64,000 nt of DNA. It comes from Amoeboaphelidium protococcarum X5 (taxonomy: Eukaryota > Fungi > Aphelidiomycota). The stretch is taken from the NCBI GenBank assembly GCA_023515725.1, contig JALDTO010000181.1:124001-188000 (forward strand), given 5' to 3'. The notes beneath the pieces were generated by a model. The model saw only the letters and a program-made list of their open reading frames with translations. It was not told the DNA's origin and searched no databases. The translations under genes and the position numbers were made by a program. Shown here one piece after another: positions 15,916-55,515 of this stretch. Position 1 is the stretch's first letter, and each line of letters begins with the position of its first letter.

Positions 15916-18027
15916 TCATTTTCGGCTTGACATTCTTGTGCCAGCAGTACTTTCAGCAGCAGATTACTACTTCTTAACCTTGTTTAAGCGTTCATGTAGA
16001 GTACGTTTACTACTATTCTAAGCGGTAGAACTTGCACCAGCACCAGCGGGAGCATTAAATAATCCAGGCGAATCTTTCCTATTTGGCGACCATGGAGCCA
16101 TCTTTTCATCACGACTGTAAGTAGACGGGCTCTTCAGTATACTTCCATCAGGGCCATGAGCGACACCATCACCATTACCATCAGCACGCGGACGCTTCCT
16201 CTCAGGACTGACGCAGACATTTTCAAAAGTCTATCGAAGCACTTTGGCGGCATCCAGAGGTGATGAAGACTATTAATGTGATCTACCTCGTCTCTGCTGA
16301 CCATCACCAGCTTTGAATCCATGGTCAACTTCCATCATATCGAGAACGCGTTTAGGTGATGACGGTGCAATAGGTAAGCGATTTAAAGCAGGAGATACCG
16401 GTACTGACGTTGGAATGGCCACTTTAGATAACCTGTAGTCTTGCACGTTGGAATCTTACATCTACTACTACTATGCATCCAAAGATCCATTAATTTAAGC
16501 CAATGCAGGGATTTGCTTGTTCTAATTTGAAGGAGGTTTAGAGGACTAATCTTTAGGCTCTAGAAGAAACATTGTAAACTAACCTCCACATCTGGCAGTG
16601 ATAACACGCCTTCCTTTAAGTTAAACTTTAAACGGCACAGTCTCATCTTCCATTTCTTCATTGCCCAGTTGATATGAGTGACCACTACCAAACGTGTACA
16701 GACTACCACCACCAGTGTACGCAATAGTAAATCTAGATTGAGCATCTACTCCAACTACTTTGTCTTCATTCAGTGGTGGAAGTCCGTGTTGGTCATCAAA
16801 TACAACTTGTGGTACTTCTCTCGGATATGGCTAATACTTTTACTTGTATGATGCAGTGTTATCAGCGGTCTGATTTCCTTATTATTACAAAGTTAAATTA
16901 CTATCAGCAGCACCATTCATAGCAAGTGAAGTTTCCAACTCAGTATCTCGTTCATCTCCAAACACAGGTCGATCCGCTTCATAGCCCAACTGTCCCTCCA
17001 GATTGGCACCCCAAGTAAAGAGTCGACCATCTGCAGATACAGCCACAGAATGTGACTCTCCAGCAGCAATATCAATAATAGGTGGTAGATCTATTCTGGT
17101 CTTTCCATCAGCAGCTATAGCATACTGGACGCGCTCAGGACCATTCAAATGAGAAAGTAAATCACCAAGACCCAGCTGACCACAATTATTGCAACCAAAG
17201 GCATACAACTCGCCATTACTACTGACGTACATGGTATGATAAGCACCACCTGTAATCTTCACAATCTAATGCAGAATACTCTAACGCTTGCCAAATCCTT
17301 TAATCTCATAAGGATCCAGATTATTCTTGAATCTTGAACTAACACGTCTCCCCAGCTGGTATTCATCATTAGCACCAAAAGCCCACAGCGTATCATCAGA
17401 GGTGATTGCAAATATATGATTTTCACCACTTCCCAGTGCGACCACTGTCTCTTTACCAAACGCACGCAATTTAATGGGCAAATTCTAACTCTTCCTCTCC
17501 ATAAGCTTATTAAATCCCAGAATTCCAGATGGATCTCTAAAACTTCCCCAGGCGTAAACTTCACCGGCATCACTTAGCACAGCACAAAAGGAATCAGCAC
17601 ATACCATCTGGACCACTTTCACGTCCAGTCCATCATCATCTTTAATCACAACTTTAAGTGGAGCCCAGGCTTCAGTGCCCTTTAACGGTTTCTCACCTTC
17701 ATCATCATCACTTGAGTCCTCATCATCACTCTCCTCAATAACTTCTTCATGTGTAATTCTACCAAGAGCACCTTGGTCATTTATACCCCAACTGTAGACA
17801 TTGCCATCTATGTCCAGAGCCAATGTGTGTTAACCACCACATTCCACGTCCACAATATACTTGTCGTTCAACAGCTTGACATTACCGGGCTTCCTGCGTT
17901 CATTCAACACAGCAGACAGGCCAAGCTCACCACCCACTCCAGAACCGAAGGTGAATACATGGCCAGGCTTCTATGATCGTTTAATAATCTATCTCTAATG
18001 CTTATCAGGTGAATGTTATAGCCTCAT
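15916..18027 (-). CDS. RCC1: RCC1/Prp20/Pim1-like Ran GEF with a long C-terminal tail, 703 aa
   Basis: RCC1 repeats: VFTFGSGVGGELGL, CGGQHTLAL..GNVYSWGINDQGALGR, VYAWGSFRD..GILGF, LYAFGCNNCGQLGLG, LFTWGANLEGQLG. Single frame with TAR=Gln. Confidence 0.82.
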
Positions 18028-18232
18028 AACTCGAATATAAATTTAATGACACTAGACTTAGGATACTATCACGAAATATAAATAAAGAAGAAAAAGAGAA
18101 ACTGACCAAGAAGAGAAAAGCGTTCAGATTTAAAACGCGATGAGCCGACGAGATGTCATCTTGCACTATCCGGTTTATCATTGGCGGGTATCATCACATT
18201 GATCTAAACTCATCTATATATAATACAAACAT

Positions 18233-20836
18233 TCATCGCGTATTCATCCAAGGCCGTTATCTTTTAAGAACGGTGCATATGATGAGAGCTAGAGCGTAAG
18301 TATCGCCTGCTTTGAGAATCAGCGCGTTACGTTCCACTACATTCTATCTGTAGTTGTGAAGCACTTCAGGTGACGCGTAGTTGATAGACAAGCCTTTCAG
18401 TTCACTAAACTTGAAGCCACTTATTTTAGGAGAATCGCTGTCTGCAATTTAAGCGATACCAAAATCTGACAATATAGGCACAAGTTGACCATCTCGATCC
18501 ACATCCAGAAGCACATTCTGCGGTTTCAGATCACAATGTATCACTTGCTGATCATGTAAAAATTCTATCGTCTAAGAGAGGGCAAGTGTTATTCTAATAA
18601 GACATCGCTTCGTCAGCTTGTACATCTACGACGTGGGAGACTCTTTGTAAATGTATTGAGCCAAGGTGCCCAGAGGATAGTACTGAAGGAGCATTGCCGG
18701 TCTTTAAGTGTCATCATATCCAAACACGTGGCAGATGAAAGGCGCATCCCGAAATCGCCATAAAAGACTTAGCTCTTGATAAAACGATTGCACCTCCAAT
18801 GAACTCAATTAAGTCAGTGTCATATTCCAGAGTTTAAGTATCACATCATGATCCTGCGATCGCTCAACAATATTAGAGTTCAATATTCGTGTGCGATACA
18901 ACTTTGATGTTCCACCTTTGGCCACCATTTACAATAGCTACACGTCTGTTGCAAGTTCAAACGTTAGAAATCCAGGTATGTACATAGCGTGCTGAGTCTC
19001 AACTTCCATAGTGTACCCATTTGTTTACGAAAAGGTTGTTGAGTAGACGGATTTCTTGGCGGCGATATCAGATGTGATAGTGTTCATTTCGATCAAGTTC
19101 TACTACGACGGAGGCATCAACTTAACCAGATTTCTTTTTTAACGCTTTCGTTTATAGATAACGTAAAACAATACAATACCTGCCAGAATTATCACAAGAC
19201 CCAGTATACTTAATAAAATTATAACAAGCCACGATTGTTATAGTCCGTCTGTTTATAGCGATATCCCCGGTGGCACTTAACTTGATATAGAGGACACTTT
19301 GAAGGTGGACTTTGTTAAAGTCTAATAAGAAATTGATGAAGATTAATGCCACAAAGGCGACTAGGTGATGAGCAAAGTCAAGGACTCCACAGTTGATGAA
19401 GGCTAAGCAACGGGTACTTCTGTTATCTGAGGAGAATTTTTAGACAGTGCATCTTCAACTAATGAAGATGATACTTATGCGGAATAGTTCATCGTGGTAC
19501 TGCCATTAATTATGGAATTTAAAGTGGACGCGGTGAATGAATTAAACATGCTCGGACTACTAGTGCTTTCCAAATGCGTCATTGTAGATGTACTATATAA
19601 CGTGCTTGAATGCGTGCTACCAGAATCTACAACGACATACCCGGCTCCTAGATGAAAAGCAGCAACATTTACAAAGCCAAACTAATCTACGACTATACCG
19701 AGCCCCATGTCATCGAATAGACCGCTGGATGGAGCCGTAAAGAAGCTGGCGATGTAAGTCCATCTCATAGTCTAGGGATTGACGCGCACAATGATTCCAT
19801 CTTTGCCCGAGCCAAAAGGTAAAGTGCCCACTTAACCAGCCGCCCAGCCTGTAGCCACTAAAAGGCTAGTGTATCGATCCAAAGTTATGGATTCAAGAGC
19901 ATCATCTTGCGTAGACCCATATATAAAGTTTTTATCCTACATCCAGGTACCTTCAAGATCAAATTAGGTTATCCACATATCAGACTTTGGCGCAGATGGC
20001 GATTGTGGAGTTTCTTGAATAAAGCCAGCAGAGTAAATTGAAGATCCATCCTGGGAAAAAGCCATCGAATTGATACCAGCTCTATATATAAAGGAGCTTT
20101 TAAACTGCAGCTCTTTAACTAAAGTGCCATTTACCATGACAATCTTGACAAAATAAGCGCTCAAGTCATTGCTGATCCCCCCTGCATAAATATACCCATT
20201 TGAATGTGAATCCAAGAGCAGAGATCTCAATTCACAGCCATTCTGTTAAGGCCGCTACACTGTCCACTCATGTAAGCCATTTGTAGAATATTTTGAGATG
20301 AAACATTGACTAAATGCCAATATGGACGAATTATCTTGTTAAGAGAGAGAATTTAGTGGCCCATAAGTTGATCCAACAATATACAAAAATTCATTATCAG
20401 CATCAACCTGGATATCCATCGCAAAATCGTCAGCTTTCGACCCGAAGCTGCGTGACCATTGTATAGCTCCTGTTCCATTTAACTTAAAAAGAGCAATATC
20501 AATGCCACCGATGACAGGCTGATTGGTGATGAATTGATTAACACAACGCCCCACCGTGTACACATCGCCAGACGCTTGATGAACACTCAAAGCTTCCAGC
20601 TGATTGCCCCTCTCGATACCAAAAGAGAGGTCAAATGAAATTTCTTAATATTCAGGGCGGCCTTTCGCTATATGAAAACGTCCATTTTTAGAGCCACACA
20701 CCCACTTCGCACCTTCGGAATCCAACGCTATGTCTGTGACATTAGTAGAAACAGCCAATTATTATAAACTTTATGGCGAAACTAGACTGATTTAAATAAT
20801 CAATAAAGCCAAGAACATATACACTATCGCATTCAT
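18233..20836 (-). CDS. Receptor-like kinase copy 1 (most divergent): signal peptide, SBBP beta-propeller, S/T-rich stalk, TM, non-RD kinase truncated after subdomain IX; 867 aa
   Basis: ATG 20836 to TGA 18233. Propeller repeats GGIDIALFKLNGTGAIQWSRSFGSKADDFAMDIQVD; TM WLVIILLSILGLVIILAGIVLFYVIY followed by KRKR; kinase AKGGTS, VILK, FYQE, HCDLKPQN, SDFG, YASPE; ends GDTYAL...RPWMNTR*. Confidence 0.88.
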
Positions 20837-21046
20837 TATAAGAATTCTGTGTAGAGTACAAAAATTAAGATAACCATTCAATACTAAACTGAAATATAAT
20901 ATTTAAAGATGACTAAGACGGGCGGCAAGTCTTATAAATAGATAAATGGGGCTCATTTAATCAAAAGAATTTCATCATAGAATCGCAAATTTCTTCTACC
21001 GCATGTTCAAATAGTAATTAATTTCTTCTATTAAACATCTTTACAC

Positions 21047-23983
21047 TCACTATTAATTATAACGCTTTCCATTTACAGTCCAAGGCTTTGAACGAGTCAA
21101 AATGTTGTACATTATTACCGCATAGGCATACACGTCGCCCGCTTTCAGGACTTGTGGTTACTTTTCAACGACCTGCCGCCTGAAATTCTGCAAAACTTCT
21201 GGTGCAGCATAGGTCACCGTCAAACCTTTCTACTGACTTACTTGGAAAGCTGCAACCTACAAAGCACTGTTATCAGCGATACAAGAGATTCCAAAGTCGG
21301 ATAGAATAGGGACCAGCCAATTTGCAACAGGATCAGAATCGAGCAGTACATTTTACGGCTTCAAGTCACAGTGCACAATTTCCTGACTATGCATATAAGC
21401 CAAAGTCTGAGCCAGAATCTTTAACAAAACATGAACTTAAACCTTACTATATGGAAACTCAGTAACCGCTTGGCCTTCTCGAAGAACGTACGATGACAAC
21501 GTGCCAAATGGATAGTACTTCAGTAACATCGCAGCTTCAAAAGTGTCACAGTAAGCGTATAGCTTTGTGATGTATGGAATATCTCTAAACTTCCATAATA
21601 AACTCAGCTCCTAATAGAATGCCTGCTGATCATTCACAGACATTTACCCAATTGCATGATTACACACCTTGGCCACCGCCTGCTCATTTCCGACCATATC
21701 ATTGATTTTGCGTGCCAGAATGCGGACAGCATAAATTTTAGACGTACCACCAGCAGCGACTTAATGCAATAGCTAAAAGTCAGTTCCAAAATCACTCTTG
21801 AGAAAGGCAGGAATGTAGATTGCGTAATTAGTTGATAAAGCAGTTGTCTGCGTTTGCATAGTTGTTCCACTAGGAAGGTAACCAGTTTACTGTGAAGATG
21901 AGTACGATGTCGCCATGTACACAGGCTTTGACAGAGTAGTGGCCTTAAGCAATGTACGTCTTTTATACTATCTATAAACCATGATAGCGCCTATAAATAC
22001 TGCAGCGATGATAAGAAACGCAACTATTCCCAAGATACTAGCGAGGGAGAAGAGATTAGAAGGTTACGACTAAGGAGCCTATGATCCATCATTAGGGTCA
22101 GAATCAGACGACGCAGTGGAAGTAAATTAATTACTTACATAACTAAAAGGGAACGCAAAGGTGAGCACAACAGATGTTTTATGCGACGACGTAGAGCCAA
22201 CCACGGTGGAACTATTTAAACTAACCAAAGATGACCATACGTAAGAAGACAATTCCAATGTTGTGCTCGTAAACACATCGGAAGTGGTAGATGTTGTAGT
22301 GGTAGTCGTAGAAGTAGTAGTTGTGGTAGTTGTCGTTGAGGTAGTAGTAGTCGTCGTGGTCGTCGTGGTCGTCGGAGTTGTTGTGGTAGTAGTAGTAGTT
22401 GTTGTTGTCGTAGGAGTAGTAGTCGTAGTGGTTGTCGTGGTAGTAGTGGTTGTGGTAGTTGTCGTAGTTGTCGTTGTCGTTGTCGTAGTTGTTGTCGTCG
22501 TTGCCGTTGTCGTGGTTGGAGTTGTTGTTGTTGTAGTGGTGGTGGTAGTCGTAGGAGTGGTAGTAGTTGTGGTAGTTGTCGTCGTGGTTGTTGGAGTCGT
22601 TGTGGTAGTAGTTGTTGTGGTAGTAGTTGTTGTGGTAGTAGTTGTTGTGGTAGTCGTAGTAGTCGTGGTAGTTGTCGTAGTTGGAGTTGTTGTAGTAGTG
22701 GTGGTGGTGGTAGTCGTTGTTGTTGTAGTGGTAGTTGTCGTAAAAGGCTTCGTAGCTGTCGTCACCAACTTTGAAAGCGCATGACCTAAGTCCTAGTCAA
22801 TTGCCAGTCTGCCATTTGCTTCCAATTAGCAGGCTACGTTCACATACCCATATCCATCAACTACTATTCCAAACCCGATATCATTCCAATTAGTTCCAAC
22901 GGAGTAAAACCTATATAAAGTAATCCCACTAAGAGTAGAGGGAGAAAGTCTTACATACATACCATCCTTTCCACCCTCGTTTAGCATTCCTAAGAACTCA
23001 CCTGTTGCCCAACCAGTGACCCAAACATTTCCGGTCGCAAAGTCGACAGTGATGGCCTCAAAGGCCTCTTCTGTCGAGGATCCCATTATCAAACTCTTCG
23101 GCTACCTAGTACCAGCCAAATTGAACTCAGTAACCCAGCCATCCCCCATTCCAGCCCAGGCTTTACCATCAATCGATCCCTGGATGTACCCGGCGGCAAA
23201 AATACTAGAACCAGAAAGACTAAATGCCAGAGAATTGAAGCCAGACTTTGCGAAGCCAGAGTTTAAGGTGGATGAAATTTCGCTTCCATCATGAGGACTG
23301 AATATAGTCAAAAACGCGTTTAAATTGAATACACCACCAGCATAAATATAGTTAGCATTGTTAGGCGCAACTAGAATTGATCTTATATCACATCCTGAAG
23401 TTGAAGTCTTTTGCACAGTCCAAATGTGTTGACCAGCTGCGCTATACTTTGATAGAAAGCACTACGAAATTGAGGACGACTGACTTGAGCCCGTGTTCAC
23501 ATAGCCATAAGTATTACCAGCGACGTACACAAACTAGTTGTACGAATCGACATACACCGTCTTTGGAAAGTCATTGTACTGTGAACCAAATATACGCGTC
23601 CATATAACTGTGCCGACTGAGTTTACTTTGACCAGCGCTATATCAACTCCACCAATCAGTGATTGGCCATTAAACGCGTTGCTACAGCGACCCACAGCAT
23701 AAACCTCCAGCGTAGCAGTGTCAACACTCACAGCTTCAAATTGATTGCCAGAGCCAGTGCCATAGGTGACAGTGCGGATAATCTTTCTAGTTGAAGGTTG
23801 GAAATTTATCAGTGCGTAAAGGCCATTCTTAGAGCACGAAATCCACAGCGAGTCATCGGAGATTAATTTGACGTCTGTTGAGTTATCGCAAACAATTGGT
23901 GTGTAATATTGGGCTTGAGCGAGTTGAAGCAGCAGTGCGATAATAAGCGCCACCACAGAGTGAAAGTATCTATTCAAGATCAT
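21047..23983 (-). CDS. Receptor-like kinase copy 2: signal peptide, SBBP propeller, long poly-Thr stalk, TM, truncated non-RD kinase; 978 aa
   Basis: ATG 23983 (MILNRYFHSVVALIIALLLQLAQAQ) to TGA 21047 in one frame with TAR=Gln. Kinase AVAK, FYQELS, HCDLKPQN, SDFGIS, YAAPE; ends GDVYAY...KPWTVNGKRYNQQ*. Confidence 0.9.
22285..22745 (-). repeat. Poly-Thr (mixed ACN codons) mucin-like stalk of RLK copy 2
   Basis: About 150 codons, almost all Thr with periodic Pro/Ser; mixed gta/gtt/gtc/gtg on the + strand. Confidence 0.9.
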
Positions 23984-25347
23984 AAAAAATGGATAATCGG
24001 ATTATCAACACTTTAAATACTAATGTTCTTGATGTAAAGATGACTCTACGGGTAGAAACTAACTGACAAATTAACGACTACGTCTGTTTCAGCATCGACC
24101 TATTTATAGATCAAACTATTAGCATAGATTTTGCAATCAAACGATATATTGGGGCAGAAGCGAATAAGGTTCGTTATGACGATTCGAGCAAAATCCTTAT
24201 TGGCTTCAAAATGACGTTGAACTAAAAACCGTTTTCTCGCCGATTCAAGCACTCTTTAGATCTTCTGACCGGACAAGAGTTGCAGTAACTATAGATATAC
24301 TTGTTGTAACTCATATTCACTTCAGTCTCTTACCTTACACTTAGCAGATGCAGGCTGAAACAAGAAAATAGAGGGGCAGATGAAAAATATACCAGAAGTG
24401 CAGAGGTCAAACATGACAATTCTTTGTGGTTTAACGAGTACAACTACCGTTCAGGGCTTATTTATAGAGGGCGCCACTCTGAATCTTAATCTGGTATTCG
24501 TACATTACTTACATGTTTAAGAAATAGCTTAAGCATTGAAAGCTTAACGCACAAGCAGAGCAATATGAAATGCAACAATGAGCGTACAGATTACACTTCG
24601 TTTGTTCTCACAATCCTACATCACATCCTTTGTAAGTAAGCTTTATATTTTCCAGATCAATTTCCCTAAACTTTTAAACTGTGACTCACGTTCAACACCT
24701 ACTGAAAGCTTTTCAATTGCAATACAAGTGCGCCTAATTCAAAGACAATTCGTCACAAGACACGTTGTACTCAACTTTTCGATCAAAGTAATAAACCACT
24801 GTTAAGTATAAGGTAAAATAATGAAGTAAGTATGAGATTTGACAAGAATATTTTCTGTTGTTCAACTCTTGTGTGGTAAAGAGAGCGAGTGAGTGACTGA
24901 AAACGCGTCAACACGGTTTCAACTCAACAACCACGAGGCTTTATATATGGTGAATGATTTAATGCCGATATTGCATGCAGCGAAGGAATGCCAGTAGTAA
25001 ATAGCTCCTGATGGCTTGTTAGAATTGGAATAACGGAGTCTCATTGATTGGAATGTGCTACCGTCGCTGCATTTCTTTCTGGACAGTTGAGAAGACTAAG
25101 TAGTGCATGCGTTTAAATCCCAGAAGTTTGCCCAATATTTGCCACATAGCAAATGTCTCACTAAAAAAACAGAAATTTTAATTGTACTTTACTGCATTGA
25201 GGAATTTATGTGACTTTAAGCCGTCAATGGCGATATATAGCCAATCATTGGGTCGTTGAAAGCCTTGATAACTACATCTGATAAGTTACATCATATACTA
25301 TTAGCAACCTCTTTATACTCATGTCGTTTTAACATCAATATAAACTC

Positions 25348-28050
25348 TCATAGTTTATTTTTATGCTTTCCAATTACATTCCAAGGCTTTAAACGCGTCA
25401 AAATGTTGCACATCATCACAGCATAAGCATATACGTCACCAGCTTTTAGCACTTGTGGTTATCTCTCCAAGAACTAATGTCTGAAATTCAGCAAAACTTC
25501 CGGTGAAGCGTAGGCCACCGTCAGACCTCTTTACTAACTGACTTGGAAGGCTGCAACCTACAGAGCACTGCTATCAGTGATACAAGATATTCCAAAGTCA
25601 GATAGAATAGGGACCAGCCAATGCGCAACAGGATCCGAGTCCAAAAGCACGTTTTAAGGCTTCAGATCGCAGTGCACGATTTCCTGACTGTGCATATAAG
25701 CCAGAGTTTGAGCCAGAATCTTTAACAAAACATGAACCTAAACCTTACTGTAAGGAAAAACATTAATCGCTTAGCCATCCCCAAGAACATAAGATGACAT
25801 TGTGCCAAATCGATAGTACTTCAATAACATGGCAGCTTCAAACGTGTCACAGTAAGCATATAGCTTTGTGATGTATGGAATATCTCTAAACTTCCATAAT
25901 AAACTGAGCTCCTAATAGAATGCCTGTTAATCGTTCACAGACATTTTCTCAATTGCATGTTTAAATACCTTGGCCACCGCCTACTCATCTCCGACCATAT
26001 CATTAATCTTATGAGCCAGAATGCGGACAGCATAAATTTTAGACGTGCCACCAGCAGCGACTTAATGCAACAACAAAAAGTCAGTTCCAAAATCACTTTT
26101 AAGAAAGGCAGGAATGTAGATTGCGTAATTAGTTGATAAAGCAGTGGTCTGCGTTTGCATACTTGTTGCGCTAGGAAGTTAATCAGTTTGCATAGTAGTA
26201 GAACAAGTAACGTAACCAGTTTACTGAGAAGATGAGTAAGATGTCGCCATTTACACAGGCTTTGACAAAGTGGTTACCTTCTGCAATGTACGTATTTGAT
26301 GCTATCTATAAACCATGATAGCGCCTATAAATACTGCAGCGATGATAACAAACGCAACAACGCCCAAGATACTTGCTAGCGAAAAGAGATTAGAAGGTTA
26401 CGACTAAGGAGCCTATGATCCATCATTAGGGTCAGAATCAGACGACGCAGTGGATGTAAATTAATTACTTACATAACTAAAAGGGAACGCAAAAGTCAGC
26501 AAAGTGGATGTTGTATGCGACGAAGTAGAGCCTGCAATGGTGGAACTATTTAAATTAATTAAAGACGACCATACATAAGAAGATGATTCCAATGTTGTGC
26601 TCGTAAACACATAAGTAGTAGTAGAAATGGAAGTCGGAGTAGAGCAAGTGGTGGTAGTAGTCGTTGTTGTCGTCGCCGTAGTAGAAGTGGTGGTAGTCGT
26701 TGTTGTAGTAGTTGTTGATGTAGATGTAGATATAGATGTAGATGTCGCAGTAGTCGTGGTGGTAGTAGTTGTCGTAGTAGTCGTAGTAGTAGTTGTTGTC
26801 GTCACAAGCTTCGTCCTTGTCGTGGCCAACCTCTAAAACGCGCGAGACTAACCTTATTAGACCGCCAATCTACCATCATTCACCAATTAGCAGGCCATAT
26901 TCACATATCCATAGAAATCGACCACTATACCAAGACCCATATCATCTACATTACTACTTACAGTGTAAAATGTATAGGTATTCTACTGGCTCAGAGAAGA
27001 AGCACTAACACGCACGTAGATACCATCTTTTCCTCCATTATTATTCAAAGTGCCTATATCTCCTTTTGCCCAGCCAGTGACCCAGATGTTTCCGGTAGCA
27101 AAGTCGACATTGATCGCTTCAAAAGCATCTTCAGACGATGACCCATATATCAAACTCTTAGCCAATTTTGTACCAGCCAAATTGAACTCAGTTACCCAGC
27201 CATCACCTAATCCTGATGCAGATTCTCCATCGATCGAACCCTGGATGTACCCGGCAGCAAATATAGTAGAACCAGAAAGACTAAACGCCAGAGCATTGAT
27301 ACCAGACCTGGTGACGCCGGTTACAACGGTGGATGAGATCTCACTTCCATCATCAGGACTGAAAACTGTAAAGAGTGCATTAACATTGTTAAATACACCA
27401 CCAGCATAAATATAGTTAGCATTGTTAGGCGCAACTAGAATTGATCTTATATCACATCCTGAAGTTGAAGTCTTTTGCACAGTCCAAATGTGTTGACCAG
27501 CAGCGCTATACTTTGATAGAAAGCACTATGAAATGGACAGCGACTGACTTGAGCCCGTGTTCACATAGCCATAAGTATTCCCAGCGACGTACACAAACTA
27601 GTTGTACGAATCAACATATACAGTCTTTGGAAAGTCATTATACATTGAACCAAATATACGCGTCCATATAACTGTGCCGACTGAGTTTACTTTGACCAGC
27701 GCTATATCAACTCCACCAATCAGTGATTGGCCATTAAACGCGTTGCTACAGCGACCCACAGCATACACCTCTAGCGTGGCAGTATCAACACTCACAGCTT
27801 CAAATTGATTACCAGAGCCAGCGCCATAGGTGACAGTGCGAGTAATAGTTTACGTTGCAGGAGCGTATTGAACCAGAGCATAAAGGCCATTCTTAGAGCA
27901 AGCAGTCCATAGTGAGCCATCTGAGCTCAATTTCACGTCAGTTGCGTTATCGCAAACAATCGTTGTGTCATATTGAGCGTGAGCACGTTGAGACAGAAAG
28001 GCAATGATTAATGCCAGCAGATTGTAACAATGATAGTATGTGAAAATCAT
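25348..28050 (-). CDS. Receptor-like kinase copy 3: signal peptide, SBBP propeller, short poly-Thr stalk, TM, truncated non-RD kinase; 900 aa
   Basis: ATG 28050 to TGA 25348 in one frame. Same motifs as copies 2 and 4; ends ...KPWNVIGKHKNKL*. Confidence 0.9.
26615..26805 (-). repeat. Poly-Thr/Ser stalk of RLK copy 3
   Basis: About 63 Thr/Ser-rich codons. Confidence 0.88.
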
Positions 28051-29407
28051 AAAAGGTATCTAAACGAAATATCATACTTTAATGTTTTATTATTAACAAT
28101 AAATTGACGAAAGCTGAGTTTAAATTAAGTGCTCCACTGACATGTTTTATTGTTACAACAAATGCCTATGCCTATTTTTAGCTCGTAATAAAGGCAGCAA
28201 TTCCTTCAAAATCAAAAGACCAGTGTTGCATAACATTAACCGTATGGGTTATCATTGAACTATTTCGATTCACCCTAAGAAGTCCACAAAAACATCTGAT
28301 TTATAATTGTGTGTTGATCCAAATATTCGGGATGAAACAAGAAAAGGGATATTACTTCTAAATTGGGCAAGAACTATAGGAACTGAAACACAACATGTGT
28401 CTCTTCTAGGCCGACCTACTGCAAGTACGGTCAGGGCGTTGCTTTAGCGTGAATCGTTCGTAATCTGAATTTGACTTACAATATTTTCTGAAATAGTTTA
28501 AGCTTTGATTTAAGGCTTGACCATGTTAAACAATATCATGCACATGGAGGTGCAATATTAATTCTCTGATAGACTTAATCACAGACCTTGCTAGTACCAA
28601 TGCATTTGTCTTTCAGTGCCTTGCAATGTTATCTTTGCTATCGGATGTTCCAACGTGATATACACTTAATTCCTGCAGGATTCCTTTCGCATACTGTCAA
28701 ATTGAAATTCTCTTTACAAGTCGTAATCACCATTAGAGGCTAAACTCAACAAGTTAACGTAATAGACGCGTCAAATTCGAACACGTCATCACGCTTATCT
28801 AGTTTCATGTTTCAAACACTTGCATTAAATGTTGAATCTTTGTAACTACAACTTTGCATCAAACATAAGTCCCAGCTTCGAACACATCATTAATTATACT
28901 CGTGCGACAGAATCCGAAGACTATTTAACATTCACATTTTCAATCAATGTTTAAGTAACAGCGAGGGATCACAAAGCAGCCATAATAGCGGACTCAACCG
29001 TCGCAATGCGATGAGTTATAAAATAGCACCTGATGTTGGATTAGTGCTGGACGATCAAAGCCTTATTTCTGATTCTTTTTGTTGAACGATGTCACCAAAA
29101 ATCAATTCATCCCGTGCAATCGAATTAATTGAACGTCGCACAAGTCTAATTTGCCACATTTTCATAATACAATAATTAGATACATACAGCTGAGAATGGA
29201 AAAATATATACTGTGCTGTATATAATGTAGATTGCATGTGACGTGAAACCACCAACGCGCATCGTCGAAACGAGCCTTACGACAATGGCAGAGTAGCCAA
29301 CCATTGATTGGGTCGTTTAAAAGTCTTCAAAATAAATACAACTGATAACTTAAACTTTAAACAATAAACTTCTTTATTTCATCCTATTTTAACATCATTA
29401 TCAATTT

Positions 29408-32400
29408 TCACTATTTACTGTAACGCTTTCCATTTACAGTCCAAGGCTTTAAACGCGTCAAAATGTTGCACATCATTACAGCATATGCGTAGACGTCACC
29501 AGCTTTCAGCACTTGAGGTTGTCTCTCCAGGAAATGATGTCTAAAATTCAGCAAAACTTCCGGTGCAGCATAAGCCACAGACAAACCTCTCTACTAACTG
29601 ACCTGGAAAGCTGCAACCTGCAGAGCACTGTCATCAGCGATACAAGAGATTCCAAAGTCGGACAGAATAGGAACCAGCCAATGTGCAACAGGATCAGAAT
29701 CGAGCAGTACATTTTACGGCTTCAAGTCACAATGCACAATTTCCTGACTGTGCATATAAGCCAAAGTCTGAGCCAGAATCTTTAGCAAAACATGAACCTG
29801 AACCTTACTATATGCAAATACATTAACCGCTTGGCCATCTCCAAGAACGTAAGATGACAAAGTGCCAAATGGATAGTACTTCAAAAGCATGGCAGCTTCA
29901 AACGTGTCGCAGTAAGCATATAGCTTTGTGATGAAAGGAACATCCCTAAACTTCCACAACAAACTAAGCTCCTGGTAGAATGCCTGCTGATCATTCACAG
30001 ACATCTACCCAATTGCATGATTACACACCTTGGCCACCGCCTGCTCATTCCCGACCATATCATTGATTTTGGGTGCCAGAATGCGGACAGCATAAATTTT
30101 AGACGTACCACCAGCAGCGACTTAATGCAATAGCTAAAAGTCAGTTCCAAAATCACTCTTGAGAAAGGCAGGAATGTAGATTGCGTAATTAGTTGATAAA
30201 GCAGTTGTCTGCGTTTGCATAGTTGTTCCACTAGGAAGGTAACCAGTTTACTGTGAAGATGAGTACGATGTCGCCATGTACACAGGCTTTGACAGAGTAG
30301 TGGCCTTAAGCAATGTACGTCTTTTATGCTATCTATAAACCATGATAGCGCCTATAAATACTGCAGCGATGATAACAAACGCAACTATTCCCAAGATACT
30401 AGCGAGGGAGAAGAGATTAGAAGGTTAAGACTAAGGAGCCTATGATCCATCATTAGGGTCAGAATCAGACGACGCAGTGGAAGTAAATTAATTACTTACA
30501 TAACTAAAAGGGAACGCAAAGGTGAGCACAACAGATGTTTTATGCGACGACGTAGAGCCAACCACGGTGGAACTATTTAAACTAACCAAAGACGACCATA
30601 CGTAAGAAGACAATTCCAATGTTGTGCTCGTAAACACATCGGAAGTGGTAGATGTTGTAGTGGTAGTGGTAGTCGTAGAAGTAGTAGTTGTTGTAGTTGT
30701 CGTTGAGGTAGTAGTAGTCGTCGTGGTCGTCGGAGTTGTTGTGGTAGTAGTAGTAGTTGTTGTTGTCGTAGGAGTAGTAGTCGTAGTGGTTGTCGTGGTA
30801 GTAGTGGTTGTGGTAGTTGGAGTTGTTGTTGTAGTAGTGGTGGTAGTTGTTGTTGTTGTAGTCGTTGTAGTAGTTGTCGTCGTAGTTGTTGGAGTCGTTG
30901 TGGTAGTAGTAGTTGTTGTTGTCGTCGTAGGAGTCGTGGTCGTAGTCGTTGTCGTAGTTGTTGTCGTCGTAGTAGTCGTTGTCGTTGTCGTGGTTGGAGT
31001 TGTTGTTGTTGTAGTGGTGGTGGTAGTCGTAGTAGTTGTCGTAGGGGTAGTAGTAGTCGTCGTGGTAGTAGTCGTACTTGTTGTTGTCGTGGTAGTTGTA
31101 GTAGTTGTACTTGTTGTAGTAGTAGTAGTCGTGGTGGTCGTCGTGGTAGTAGTTGTCGTAGTAGTCGTAGTAGTAGTTGTTGTCGTCACAGGCTTCGTCC
31201 TTGTCGTGGCCAACCTCTAAAATGCGCGAGACTAACCTTATTAGACCGCCAATCTACCATCATTCACCAATTAGCAGGCAATATTCACATATCCATAGAA
31301 ATCGACCACTATGCCAAGACCCATATCATCCATAGTACTGCTCACAGTGTAAAAATTATAGGAGTTCTACCAGTTTAAAGTAGAAGGACTTAGCCGCAAG
31401 TACACCCCATCCTTTCCTCCATTATTACTAAATGAGCCCGCAGTTCCTTTTATCCAGCCAGTGACCCAGATGTTTCCGGTAGCAAAGTCGACATTGATCG
31501 CTTCAAAAGCATCTTCAGACGATGACCCATATATCAAACTCTTAGCCAATTTTGTACCAGCCAAATTGAACTCAGTTACCCAGCCATCACCTAATCCTGA
31601 TGCAGATTCTCCATCGATCGAACCCTGGATGTACCCGGCAGCAAATATAGTAGAACCAGAAAGACTAAACGCCAGAGCATTGATACCAGACCTGGTGACG
31701 CCGGTTACAACGGTGGATGAGATCTCACTTCCATCATCAGGACTGAAAACTGTAAAGAGTGCATTAACATTGTTAAATACACCACCAGCATAAATATAGT
31801 TAGCATTGTTAGGCGCAACTAGAATTGATCTTATATCACATCCTGAAGTTGAAGTCTTTTGCACAGTCCAAATGTGTTGACCAGCAGCGCTATACTTTGA
31901 TAGAAAGCACTATGAAATGGACAGCGACTGACTTGAGCCCGTGTTCACATAGCCATAAGTATTCCCAGCGACGTACACAAACTAGTTGTACGAATCAACA
32001 TATACAGTCTTTGGAAAGTCATTATACATTGAACCAAATATACGCGTCCATATAACTGTGCCGACTGAGTTTACTTTGACCAGCGCTATATCAACTCCAC
32101 CAATCAGTGATTGGCCATTAAACGCGTTGCTACAGCGACCCACAGCATACACCTCTAGCGTGGCAGTATCAACACTCACAGCTTCAAATTGATTACCAGA
32201 GCCAGCGCCATAGGTGACAGTGCGAGTAATAGTTTACGTTGCAGGAGCGTATTGAACCAGAGCATAAAGGCCATTCTTAGAGCAAGCAGTCCATAGTGAG
32301 CCATCTGAGCTCAATTTCACGTCAGTTGCGTTATCGCAAACAATCGTTGTGTCATATTGAGCGTGAGCACGTTGAGACAGAAAGGCAATGATTAATGCCA

Positions 32401-32428
32401 GCAAATAAAGATAATAATACTAATGCAT
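29408..32428 (-). CDS. Receptor-like kinase copy 4 (mosaic of copy 3-like and copy 2-like parts): signal peptide, SBBP propeller, longest poly-Thr stalk, TM, truncated non-RD kinase; 1006 aa
   Basis: ATG 32428 (MHQYYYLYLLALIIAFLSQRAHAQ) to TGA 29408 in one frame; ends ...KPWTVNGKRYSKQ*. Confidence 0.9.
30645..31190 (-). repeat. Poly-Thr stalk of RLK copy 4
   Basis: About 180 codons, mostly Thr, with mixed synonymous codons. Confidence 0.9.
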
Positions 32429-33270
32429 AATGGTCTTTAAAGTTAGATAATCGATTTATCAATACTTTTAATTGTTACAGTTATTATTATTACTATTGAT
32501 GAAATATGACACCATAAGAAGATAAAGACTGTCAAACAGTTAAGTGGCCTGTGTGTTACGACATGCGCTATTTTTAGCACTCAATTAAGGACATGAGGTT
32601 ATTATGTAAAGAATTCTTTAGAAGGTAGAATATAATTGCAAATAACTGTAAAGATTATATTCCACATAACAATAAAACAATGTTATAATTGAAGGTAGAT
32701 AAAGGCGATGATATAATTCGTTAAAAGTTAGCAAAAGGCTGAAGATACCATAGAGCTGAAGCTTGAAACGGGCCGTCTTTTGCCCTCTTCCCGCTCTCGT
32801 TCTCATTGTTCTTACTGTACAGTACATCTGTCGTGCAACTTAGAGCCAAAGAGAAAGCATATGCGGACAAATAATCAACCATGATGTTGTCACAAATTAA
32901 ATTTACCTTAAAGTTGTTTCATCACCTCTTTCCTCAGTATATCCTCGCTGGCGAGTAAACGAAATCGCGTTGCATTTCTATATCTGAGTACTGGTAGTTG
33001 ACATGGTTATAGTCTTACGCGCCTATCATACTTCTTTCAAAGGCAATGGTGTCTAGCTTTCGAGAAGATACTCACTTGACAAACTTTGGCGCGATAATTA
33101 GAGATTAAATTACTGCCGTTTGACGAATTCACTGCGGCTCCTGGGTATGGTTAGAGTAATAAGGGGCAACTAGGGATCAGATGATGTGCAGTCCTCAATT
33201 TCACACACTTTGCTCTCACTCAACAACAATCGCGGAACTCCATTTAATTCTCTGACTCGAATTTTCGACT

Positions 33271-52905: not shown

Positions 52906-55515
52906 TCAACCTCTCACTTGAGAACTATTTTACACTTGCTCCAGTATCTCAAGGACCCATTTCATCTAGAGCCTTGATTGCGGCTCGTCTGCCCAACATT
53001 GAACCATAATCTCACAAAGTCCTCGAACTTTAGCATCGGTTTACTTTTATAATAAAACTTCCTCCGTGAGAGCTGGTCTTTCACCTCCAATAACAGCTTT
53101 AAGAATTTACTTGGCAGTCATCGAACGTGGCCAAGGTAGCCGGCGCGTAACGAGCTCGTACGCTACCATGGCAAACGAATACACATCAGTCGCTTTAATT
53201 TACTCGGCATAACTAGACTCTGAATCTCGCGCAGAGGACTCTTATGGATTAGCAACGCGCCTAAGAACTTCAGGTGCAGCATATGCAACACTCACACCAT
53301 CAACCTTAGACATTTGGAACGCGTCAACGATAGGCACGTTAGTATTAACAATCCTGGAAATACCGAAATCAGACAATACAGCATATAGAGACTTTTCATC
53401 TTCATCAATCAGAATATTAGCGCTTTTGATGTCACAGTGAGCAAAACCAGAATCGTGCATCTCCTTTATCCCGGTGGCAATGTCCTTCATTAGGCTAAAC
53501 TTCAGATCCGATGTCCAATTGACATACTTGGCCGATTCGGGATTGTATAAAATGGCAGACAGCGCTCCTCTTGTATATTTCTTCATTATGATCATTGGTG
53601 GATTATCTGTAAATCCAAGCAACTTTGCGAAATTCCGACTGCTCCTAAAGAACCACATCATGGAAATCTCCTACGTGAACGATGCAATCTCGTCCCTTTC
53701 ACTGATATCACTATTCAGGATCTTGACTACACAACGCTCCATCCCTTCAGCTCTGTTTTATAAATCTGATGACAGAATCTTAGCCGTGCAAATTCTAGCA
53801 GCGCCACCTTTGGCAATCTCAGCCTCTATGGTGAAGTCATCATTCTCTGTATACTGGAGAAATCCAGGAATCGCAAGCTCGCGTTAGTTCACTATAACAG
53901 TATTATTCAGAGTAAAAGAATTTGAGGTCTCCGAGGTGGTAGTATTCTCAATACTGACAGGAAGTTGAGTGAAGTTAACAGAAACATTAGTAAGACCAGT
54001 CGGGCGCAATCTACTCTCAAAACTCTTGTACAAAGCTTCAGGCGTTATTAACGCACCAGCACCATTTCTATTCATAGCCATAGACGTAACAACCCTTTAC
54101 TGAACATTAGGATTCATTTGAGCCTAATATTATTGTGACTACTAAAACTGTTAAGGAGCATTGATTCCAACAGAAGGATAAGGTTGTTGAGCTTATAACA
54201 TATCGCCTGGGTTGCCACCGATAGTTTACTTTTATACAAATTTTCTAATGACAGATTGTGGTGCATCGCCTTGACCAGCGTTGTCAGCTCTCGATGGATC
54301 CTCTACAAGAACATGCAAAACTGGTTATTACACACGCATGGCAGTCTTGATACTCTGCAATTATTGCGGAGGTATATTCGGAGCCTGTACTGCATAATTC
54401 TAATACTGCGGCATTTACTGCTATTATTGCTACTGCGGCTGGATCATATTAGCAGGAGCAACCAAAGGACGATCACTGTTCACTCTACCTCTCATGCTAC
54501 CAAAATGCTAAGGCATAGGAGGTGCATTCAGAGGAATGAAATTTCCATCTTCGGCTTATATTAGATTAGGCTATGATTTATTACGCGGTCTCATGAGTTC
54601 TCCGGGGGCATTCTAGATATCAATCAAAGTGGGAACATCTTCTGAGGCCAGAAAGGGGAGCTGTTTCTGAGACTAAACTTGGCGCGAACTTCGCTTTACT
54701 GTACCTTCTCTCACCAGATGATTATGCTGTATCTTCAACTTGGCAAGATAGTCTTCGTACTGACTCCTTGCGCCAGATTATTCACCCAAATCTCGCTAAT
54801 TCTACGAGCTTCCTTTAGAAATGGAATTGAACTTTGATTGATCTTGGATATCAGCTCGCTGTATATTGCTCACAGATCTCAATCTTTCCACTGTTTGAGG
54901 AGTGACATGAGTAGGTGGCACAGTTTCCAGAGACATGCCACTTTGAACATCTATAGGACTACTTCCTTTCTCACCATATTGCTACGGGCTATTCTGTAAT
55001 CGCATAGCAGTATCCGAAGGCAGATCTCGTCTGCTCTTACTCATCTACATAGTCAAGGGCTACTGCTGTTACGACTACTGAACCTTTCCGTCATACTTAT
55101 CACGAGTGGTTGCAATCGGGGCGCTAAAAGAACCAAAATTCTAAGTAGACTGAGGAGGATTGTACGCCAACTATGAGGTGGCCTGTGGTGCAAGATTATT
55201 TTGACTATTAGCTCCTGCTGCTTGAGGCGCCTGATTACTTCTTGCTTTTTTCTAGGCGATCATTGCCGATCTCTGAGCAGATCGTTTGCGTACGGCCAAG
55301 CACACTGTGGCAATCACCGCCACTCCAATTAAGGCGCATACTACAGAAATTGCTACTACAGCTGCAGAAGGTCCCGGTGTTGAGTTACTACCACTGTCTT
55401 ATCTCTTCTCTAATCTAATAATTTATGGTTGCATCTCCTATCGCCGATACCCAAGGGCTCTTTCAACGAAGATCATGGTTAGAATATACATCCACTTGAT
55501 CATCTAATGAGCCAT
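52906..55515 (-). CDS. Single-pass kinase of the same family as the RLK array: signal peptide, roughly 25-aa ectodomain, TM, long Q/P-rich linker, complete non-RD kinase; 869 aa
   Basis: MAHQMIKWMYILTMIFVERALG...LEKRQDSG; TM AVVAISVVCALIGVAVIATVCLAV followed by RKR; IPGFL, AKGGAA, CVVK, FTQEISMMWFFR, HCDIKSAN, SDFGIS, YAAPE, TDVYSF..LPW..GERP..MVQCWADEPQSRL. Confidence 0.88.

Follow-up and report, generated by a model that had tools for sequence, protein, structure and literature searches.

The subject of this analysis is an array of four genes on the reverse strand of a 64,000-nucleotide stretch of the Amoeboaphelidium protococcarum X5 genome (contig JALDTO010000181.1, positions 124,001 to 188,000), hereinafter the window, in whose own coordinates all positions without a contig name are given. 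Each gene codes for a receptor-like kinase that ends just past helix F and lacks helices G, H, and I (the GHI subdomain, Hanks subdomains X and XI), a hallmark of eukaryotic protein kinases (EPKs). A. protococcarum is known to decode UAR as glutamine (PMC5304391), and the genes were read here with TAA and TAG as glutamine and TGA as the sole stop. In-frame TAA and TAG codons are abundant across the window, where the TGA-only reading yields long unbroken open reading frames (ORFs), and kinase matches throughout the genome likewise contain TAA or TAG in frame and almost never TGA. A local example of this code is an RCC1-repeat gene (positions 15919 to 18123, reverse strand), whose GGQHTLAL repeat uses TAA for glutamine. 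The assembly (23.6 Mb in 346 contigs) holds most of the loci in duplicate, at 88 to 95% DNA identity and a synonymous divergence (dS) of about 0.25 to 0.35, and contig C137 represents a second copy of the window region. For searches and folding we used stop-free gene pieces and database proteins, among them P0003, which is identical to the first array protein; elsewhere, code 6 translation was applied.

The four genes, all on the reverse strand, are copy 1 (18233 to 20836, 867 amino acids, stop codon TGA at 18233 to 18235), copy 2 (21047 to 23983, 978 amino acids, TGA at 21047 to 21049), copy 3 (25348 to 28050, 900 amino acids, TGA at 25348 to 25350), and copy 4 (29408 to 32428, 1,006 amino acids, TGA at 29408 to 29410). 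Each is a single uninterrupted ORF with the same order of parts, namely, a hydrophobic leader, a propeller-like ectodomain, a stalk that is Thr-rich in copies 2 to 4 and Ser/Thr-rich in copy 1, one transmembrane segment (19166 to 19234, 21977 to 22054, 26311 to 26388, and 30338 to 30415 in copies 1 to 4, respectively), a conserved YAIYIPAFL motif, and the kinase domain. This receptor-like architecture was read from hydrophobicity, the N-termini being hydrophobic and a single hydrophobic segment of 23 to 26 residues preceding the kinase. The truncated kinase domain, which we take together with the juxtamembrane IPGFL motif in copy 1, spans positions 18236 to 18991 in that copy and ends in RPWMNTR; its counterparts occupy positions 21050 to 21826 in copy 2 (ending in KPWTVNGKRYNQQ), 25351 to 26127 in copy 3 (ending in KPWNVIGKHKNKL), and 29411 to 30187 in copy 4 (ending in KPWTVNGKRYSKQ). 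These ends, each at a TGA that lies 4 to 10 codons past the PW following helix F, are the ones given in the preliminary description of this DNA.

The domains are recognizable members of the EPK superfamily. P0003 scores 77.5 bits against the Pfam Pkinase model (PF00069), for which the curated cutoff is 31.7, and stop-free pieces of copy 4 and of paralogs also lie above the Pfam cutoff (Pkinase PF00069 or PK_Tyr_Ser-Thr PF07714). The β3 Lys, the helix C Glu (in FYQELSLLW), the HCDLKPQN, SDFGI[SA], and YA[AS]PE motifs, and the helix F Asp are all kept in the four copies, which bears out the earlier claim that their catalytic residues are intact. As in other members of the superfamily, an activation segment runs from DFG to APE and is anchored to helix F. 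Nothing of the catalytic machinery is missing from the retained part, which comprises the N-lobe, both the catalytic and the Mg loop, the whole activation segment including APE, and helix F. The matches to Pkinase end at model position 197 to 199 of 263, which is 1 to 4 residues before the C-terminus of the protein, and those to PK_Tyr_Ser-Thr end at or before position 200 of 258; subdomains X and XI are absent from the array copies, as had been proposed, and with them the Arg that forms an ion pair with the APE Glu.

A relative with the full C-lobe lies in the same window, again in agreement with the preliminary description. This gene (52906 to 55515, reverse strand) codes for 869 amino acids, in which a short ectodomain and one transmembrane segment are followed by a long Gln-rich linker and then by a complete kinase domain. 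The tail after its LPW (52909 to 53130, reverse strand; subdomains X and XI, ...CWADEPQSRLQM...) comprises 74 residues, carries the CW..EP..R motif of subdomain XI, and is the part missing from the array genes. With about 50 extracellular residues and a Gln-rich linker of about 480 residues, the architecture of this protein is very unlike that of the array proteins.

We then considered whether the stop is a genuine gene end. The alternative is an annotation artifact, in which a hidden 3′ exon or read-through of the TGA would supply subdomains X and XI, and two features of the DNA speak for it, namely, a GTAAAT or GTAATT after KPW in copies 2 to 4 and 69 to 121 open codons past the TGA in some paralogs. 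The candidate splice donor, however, reads GTTACT in the C137 copy and differs or is absent in other subfamilies, and it is unlike the two introns that we read in this genome, which are 60 to 90 nucleotides (nt) long with the pattern GTAAG[TA]...TGTAG; because it is neither conserved nor of this form, we rejected it. Nor is there room behind copy 2, where the spacer between its stop and the ATG of copy 1 (20837 to 21046, reverse strand) measures 210 bp, close to the roughly 200 bp estimated earlier; it is too short for an intron plus a 65-residue exon and has no match to subdomains X and XI. The longer spacers after copy 3 (23984 to 25347, reverse strand) and copy 4 (28051 to 29407, reverse strand) contain no kinase tail match, in any forward frame in the case of the former. 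A tail profile of subdomains IX to XI, built from 18 full-length kinases of the genome and run, with TGA read through, over all forward frames of the 2 kb that follow 29 loci, matched helix F and nothing beyond it, and BLASTP with the tail of the full-length paralog found nothing in all six code 6 frames of positions 17800 to 32600. The read-through frames of three loci (L005, L002, and L007) looked helix G-like by eye, but a decayed C-lobe behind the TGA was rejected, as Smith-Waterman comparison with the full tail gave z scores below 2 at all 29 loci.

Conservation of the DNA breaks off at the same place. Between the two diverged copies in the genome, the last 600 nt ahead of the stop are nearly gapless at 84 to 99% identity, and in the first 100 nt past it gaps set in and identity falls; only about 12 nt past the stop are conserved. 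The 1.3-kb spacers after copies 3 and 4 are either about 70% identical to their C137 counterpart, as is the one after copy 3, or unalignable; the one after copy 4 aligns to other spacers over its first 110 nt or so only, which is likely the 3′ untranslated region. With one stop codon, an open frame is expected to run for a mean of about 64 codons, so that the finding of a stop 1 to 13 codons past the motif in all 27 intact family members (see below) is not due to chance. A second in-frame TGA follows within three codons in 12 of these 27 genes, against about 1 expected by chance. The stop context is itself conserved among them as TGAATGAA or TGATGA (e.g., at 18233 to 18235 in the window and in loci L012, L017, and L019), a pattern that may serve termination in general where a genome has just one stop codon. 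Although the point of truncation is kept, the precise end can shift by a few codons: the TGA of copy 2 (21047 to 21049) is a TAA, i.e., Gln, in the C137 copy (L021, 335 to 3355), where the frame continues for three codons (…NQQQVQ) to the next TGA.

The ends of the four array genes were read from genomic DNA, and the transcripts that we examined are those of Paraphelidium tribonemae. At least eight independent Paraphelidium transcripts code for proteins that stop 1 to 2 residues past the Trp; a relative using the standard code ends at a TAA, with the 3′ end of a convergent gene 17 nt beyond; and P0003, the public NCBI protein of copy 1, ends at the same TGA as our gene. A downstream exon with subdomains X and XI, which had been named in advance as the observation that would overturn the proposal, was thus not found within 2 kb, and in a related genus the transcripts end at this point too. 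Taking these findings together, the end after helix F is a real gene end, and an artifact of annotation is highly improbable.

The truncation extends far beyond the window. A genome search with a 96-residue piece of copy 4 returned about 37 loci at an identity of at least 40%, of which 24 regions were fetched. All 27 intact family members, from at least five subfamilies, end 1 to 13 codons past the (K/R)PW, VW, or AY position, and only the full-length gene and its C137 counterpart extend past the truncation point in the fetched regions. A PF07714 match that ends near position 200 is also seen in other kinases of the genome, but these proved on inspection to be ordinary full-length kinases; the helix F truncation is specific to this receptor kinase family. 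A HMMER search of 1.84 billion representative proteins with the last 135 residues of one paralog recovered more than 100 clusters at 50% identity, with proteins of 400 to 1,500 residues in which the kinase match reaches within a few residues of the C-terminus. These come from A. protococcarum (in two locus tag series), A. occidentale, and the Paraphelidium tribonemae transcriptome, with the rest from ENA, JGI, and Logan assemblies; the A. protococcarum protein KAI3637384.1 is 91% identical to one family member. The family has so far been found only in aphelids and environmental relatives, and the literature that we searched yielded no paper describing such a truncated receptor kinase family. 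The ectodomains differ among members (SBBP-like, WD40, and Kelch propellers and Cys-rich repeats), whereas the cytoplasmic part stays the same. We aligned 65 diverse members from more than 60 clusters sharing less than 50% identity, and 64 of them have 0 to 13 residues past the conserved Trp. The sole long extension is that of P0053 (A. protococcarum MP228_009842), a Gln-rich tail of 50 residues that is not recognizably GHI-like.

The same alignment bears on whether the family is maintained. H158, D160, N165, D182, G184, P214, and D236 are invariant in it; the catalytic His, Asp, and Asn and the DFG Asp are thus found in all 65 members, and the β3 Lys and the helix C Glu are each found in 63. 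The kinase region has a ratio of nonsynonymous to synonymous substitution rates (dN/dS) of 0.045 to 0.20 in the 17 pairs of truncated genes that allowed an estimate of dS, including copies 1, 2, and 4 against their C137 counterparts and copies 2, 3, and 4 against each other. Neutral evolution of this region, which would have counted against the earlier proposal, is therefore not what is seen, and these rates indicate that the truncation has been kept under purifying selection. The possibility that the genes are decaying pseudogenes created by a premature stop might draw on the few broken loci of the family (L010, C264:1654800-1663100; L011, C264:1759400-1767700; and L018, C245:110700-119000), which are fragments or have an in-frame TGA or a frameshift in the kinase region and are probably pseudogenes beside intact genes. 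Against it stand these dN/dS values, the intact frame of 867 to 1,006 codons in each of the four genes, and the recurrence of one end point in three species and in paralogs with as little as 40% identity; on these selection and conservation data the view is refuted and can in effect be dismissed.

In our trees, the truncated proteins and the full-length paralog form a well-supported clade apart from the other kinases of the genome. When all truncated members are constrained to one clade, the tree is slightly better than the free one and is not rejected by an approximately unbiased (AU) test (P = 0.758); a single loss is therefore compatible with the data. Such a loss would predate the split between Paraphelidium and Amoeboaphelidium, a scenario that is consistent with these comparisons though not proven by them. 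The evidence strongly favors the earlier suggestion of an old and maintained truncation, since the truncation is common to all of the subfamilies in this genome, to A. occidentale, to the Paraphelidium transcripts, and to many environmental relatives, and bears the mark of purifying selection. What emerges is an EPK-type receptor kinase with full catalytic and activation machinery from which the GHI subdomain was lost, a loss that is old, selected, and common to the whole family.

To obtain a structural view, residues 610 to 867 of copy 1 were modeled with AlphaFold2 by using the 65-sequence alignment. The model is confident (predicted local distance difference test [pLDDT] score of 93.5, predicted template modeling [pTM] score of 0.90) and comprises a normal N-lobe, helix E, the catalytic core, and the activation segment, with helices at residues 214 to 221 and 229 to 249, the latter being helix F and the last element. 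Folding the monomer had been proposed as a check on the truncated domain, and by this measure independent folding of the retained part is predicted; a homodimer prediction for the domain scored 0.02, which speaks neither for nor against a dimer. Model residues 14 to 258 superpose on BRAF residues 449 to 660 (Z score of 21.6, root mean square deviation [RMSD] of 2.3 Å over 209 residues) and end before helix G. The BRAF kinase domain itself reaches about residue 717, and the model thus lacks an equivalent for its last 57 or so residues, which form helices G to I.

The best structural matches are RAF, RET, RIPK2, CTR1, EGFR family kinases, and IRAK4. Kinases of the tyrosine kinase-like (TKL) group and receptor kinases (RAF, IRAK4, RIPK2, and CTR1 and the tyrosine kinases RET and EGFR) align over about 200 to 217 residues with Z scores of 20.6 to 21.6 and RMSDs of 2.1 to 3.0 Å. 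The aphelid proteins share with them the combination of a single-pass receptor and a cytoplasmic kinase, their catalytic loop, HCDLKPQN, is of the Ser/Thr type, and the full-length sister gene has the CW..P..R version of subdomain XI typical of the group. Unlike these kinases, the aphelid domain stops at the equivalent of BRAF residue 660, and helices G, H, and I and the Arg that pairs with APE are gone; none of the solved relatives among the top 50 structural matches is cut at this end point.

Several other kinds of reduced kinase invite comparison. Taylor and colleagues named the GHI subdomain and the Glu208-Arg280 ion pair as features separating EPKs from eukaryotic-like kinases (ELKs) (PMC3415842). 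The aphelid proteins resemble ELKs in that neither the conserved GHI subdomain nor the Glu208-Arg280 pair accompanies the catalytic core (PMC3415842); however, ELKs lack the long regulated activation segment and have other, unrelated helices past helix F, whereas the aphelid proteins have a full DFG-to-APE segment and nothing past helix F and are clearly descended from EPKs. OspG, NleH1/2, and SteC also have kinase folds that are shortened in nature but remain working kinases; of these, NleH and OspG lack subdomains VIII to XI (PMC12756638) and SteC has been described as having a minimal kinase domain (PMC13395416). These, in contrast, are secreted bacterial effectors that are cut earlier, without the activation segment or the helix F region, and to which we saw no sequence relationship, whereas the aphelid proteins are endogenous eukaryotic membrane receptors in which subdomains VIII (APE) and IX (helix F) are present and only X and XI are missing. 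A further parallel is offered by the atypical kinases of the Bud32/PRPK and RIO families, which are small and have reduced C-lobes. The aphelid proteins differ from these: their sole Pfam assignments are Pkinase and PK_Tyr_Ser-Thr, they possess an APE motif and a helix F of the classical EPK kind, and they group with a full-length EPK paralog.

We propose that the four genes code for single-pass, TKL-like, receptor-like Ser/Thr kinases that end by a genuine stop just past helix F and are probably catalytically competent. Each protein consists of a putative signal peptide, a β-propeller-type ectodomain, a stalk, one transmembrane helix, a conserved IPxFL juxtamembrane motif, and the kinase domain. 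Such a kinase, with a core resembling that of the simpler eukaryotic-like kinases, might signal by autophosphorylation or by phosphorylation of nearby substrates upon engagement or clustering of the ectodomain, and it would do so without the GHI docking platform and without the APE Glu-Arg ion pair. One possibility is that R250 and W254 (alignment A1 numbering), which are conserved near the C-terminal end, cap the exposed face of helix F. A “minimal kinase” is the best reading of the truncated domain.

A number of points weigh against this proposal. In PKA, mutation of either side of the Glu208-Arg280 pair strongly lowers activity (PMC3415842), and the loss of the whole GHI block might therefore abolish catalysis; activity without it would be surprising, given that the GHI subdomain and the ion pair distinguish EPKs and that mutants of the pair impair PKA (PMC3415842). 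The window copies have a degenerate glycine-rich loop (AAGGTSKIY), and one subfamily and L016 (L003 to L007 and L016; contigs C212, C264, C192, and C146) have DLG in place of DFG, with the Asp kept. A confident AlphaFold model does not demonstrate that the truncated domain is stable, and the free tree nests the full-length paralog within the truncated clade, with weak support.

One rival possibility is that the domain is a pseudokinase or nucleotide-binding switch that folds and perhaps binds ATP without transferring phosphate, serving as a scaffold or a ligand-binding coreceptor. The impairment of catalysis expected when the GHI subdomain and the Arg that partners the APE Glu are missing (PMC3415842) and the degenerate glycine-rich loop are both in line with such a role, as is the relaxation of the APE Glu itself, whose partner is lost and which is replaced by Asp in 13 of the 65 members. 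Pseudokinases, however, usually lose at least one of the Lys, the catalytic Asp, and the DFG Asp, and the alignment offers no sign of such a loss as a family trait: no member departs from the catalytic His, Asp, and Asn or the DFG Asp, and the near-universal retention of the Lys and the Glu holds across clusters that share less than half of their residues. We regard a noncatalytic role as unlikely on this evidence.

Alternatively, a separate protein might pack on the exposed face formed by helices E and F and complete the domain in trans, supplying the GHI function or a docking surface; the candidates would be the full-length paralog at positions 52906 to 55515, a second receptor copy, or an unrelated partner. 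OspG depends on a bound host protein. Minimal bacterial kinases such as OspG and NleH, which are without subdomains VIII to XI (PMC12756638), speak for this idea, and a full-length, membrane-anchored relative is at hand 20 kb away in the same window. On the other side, there is no conserved neighbor gene, the downstream neighbors being an RCC1-like gene, another array copy, or a convergent kinase, and no partner was identified, with no genome-wide search for a stand-alone GHI-like gene having been made. Completion in trans is compatible with a catalytically competent minimal kinase, but as an explanation it is rather doubtful.

The GHI subdomain and the buried ion pair with APE are regarded as a hallmark of EPKs and also as a docking and allosteric hub (PMC3415842). 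The loss of the subdomain here is of interest to both kinase structural biology and aphelid biology. A selected family without it, numbering at least 27 genes in this genome and more than 100 public clusters at 50% identity, amounts to a natural experiment that could address what the GHI block is needed for, how helix F is stabilized without it, and how substrates are recruited without the usual platform. The chances seem about even that aphelids, the sister group of Fungi, possess a large and diversified receptor kinase family whose EPK-derived domain is stable and active without both the GHI subdomain and the Glu-Arg pair; if so, nature would here have reverted to a minimal kinase core while keeping the full activation segment. 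The family is also a sign of an aphelid receptor repertoire that had not been described before, and its variable ectodomains may bear on the sensing of algal hosts by these parasitoids.

Some further observations concern the surroundings and the annotation of these genes. The RCC1-repeat gene begins about 200 bp downstream of the copy 1 stop. On contig C137, the array consists of three genes (L001 and L021; C137:44000-62999), which are the counterparts of copies 1, 2, and 4, copy 3 having none there. Among the environmental members, six from JGI metagenomes (P0216, P0223, P0227, P0230, P0236, and P0237) were automatically labeled “tRNA A-37 threonylcarbamoyl transferase component Bud32,” presumably because of their short kinase domain.

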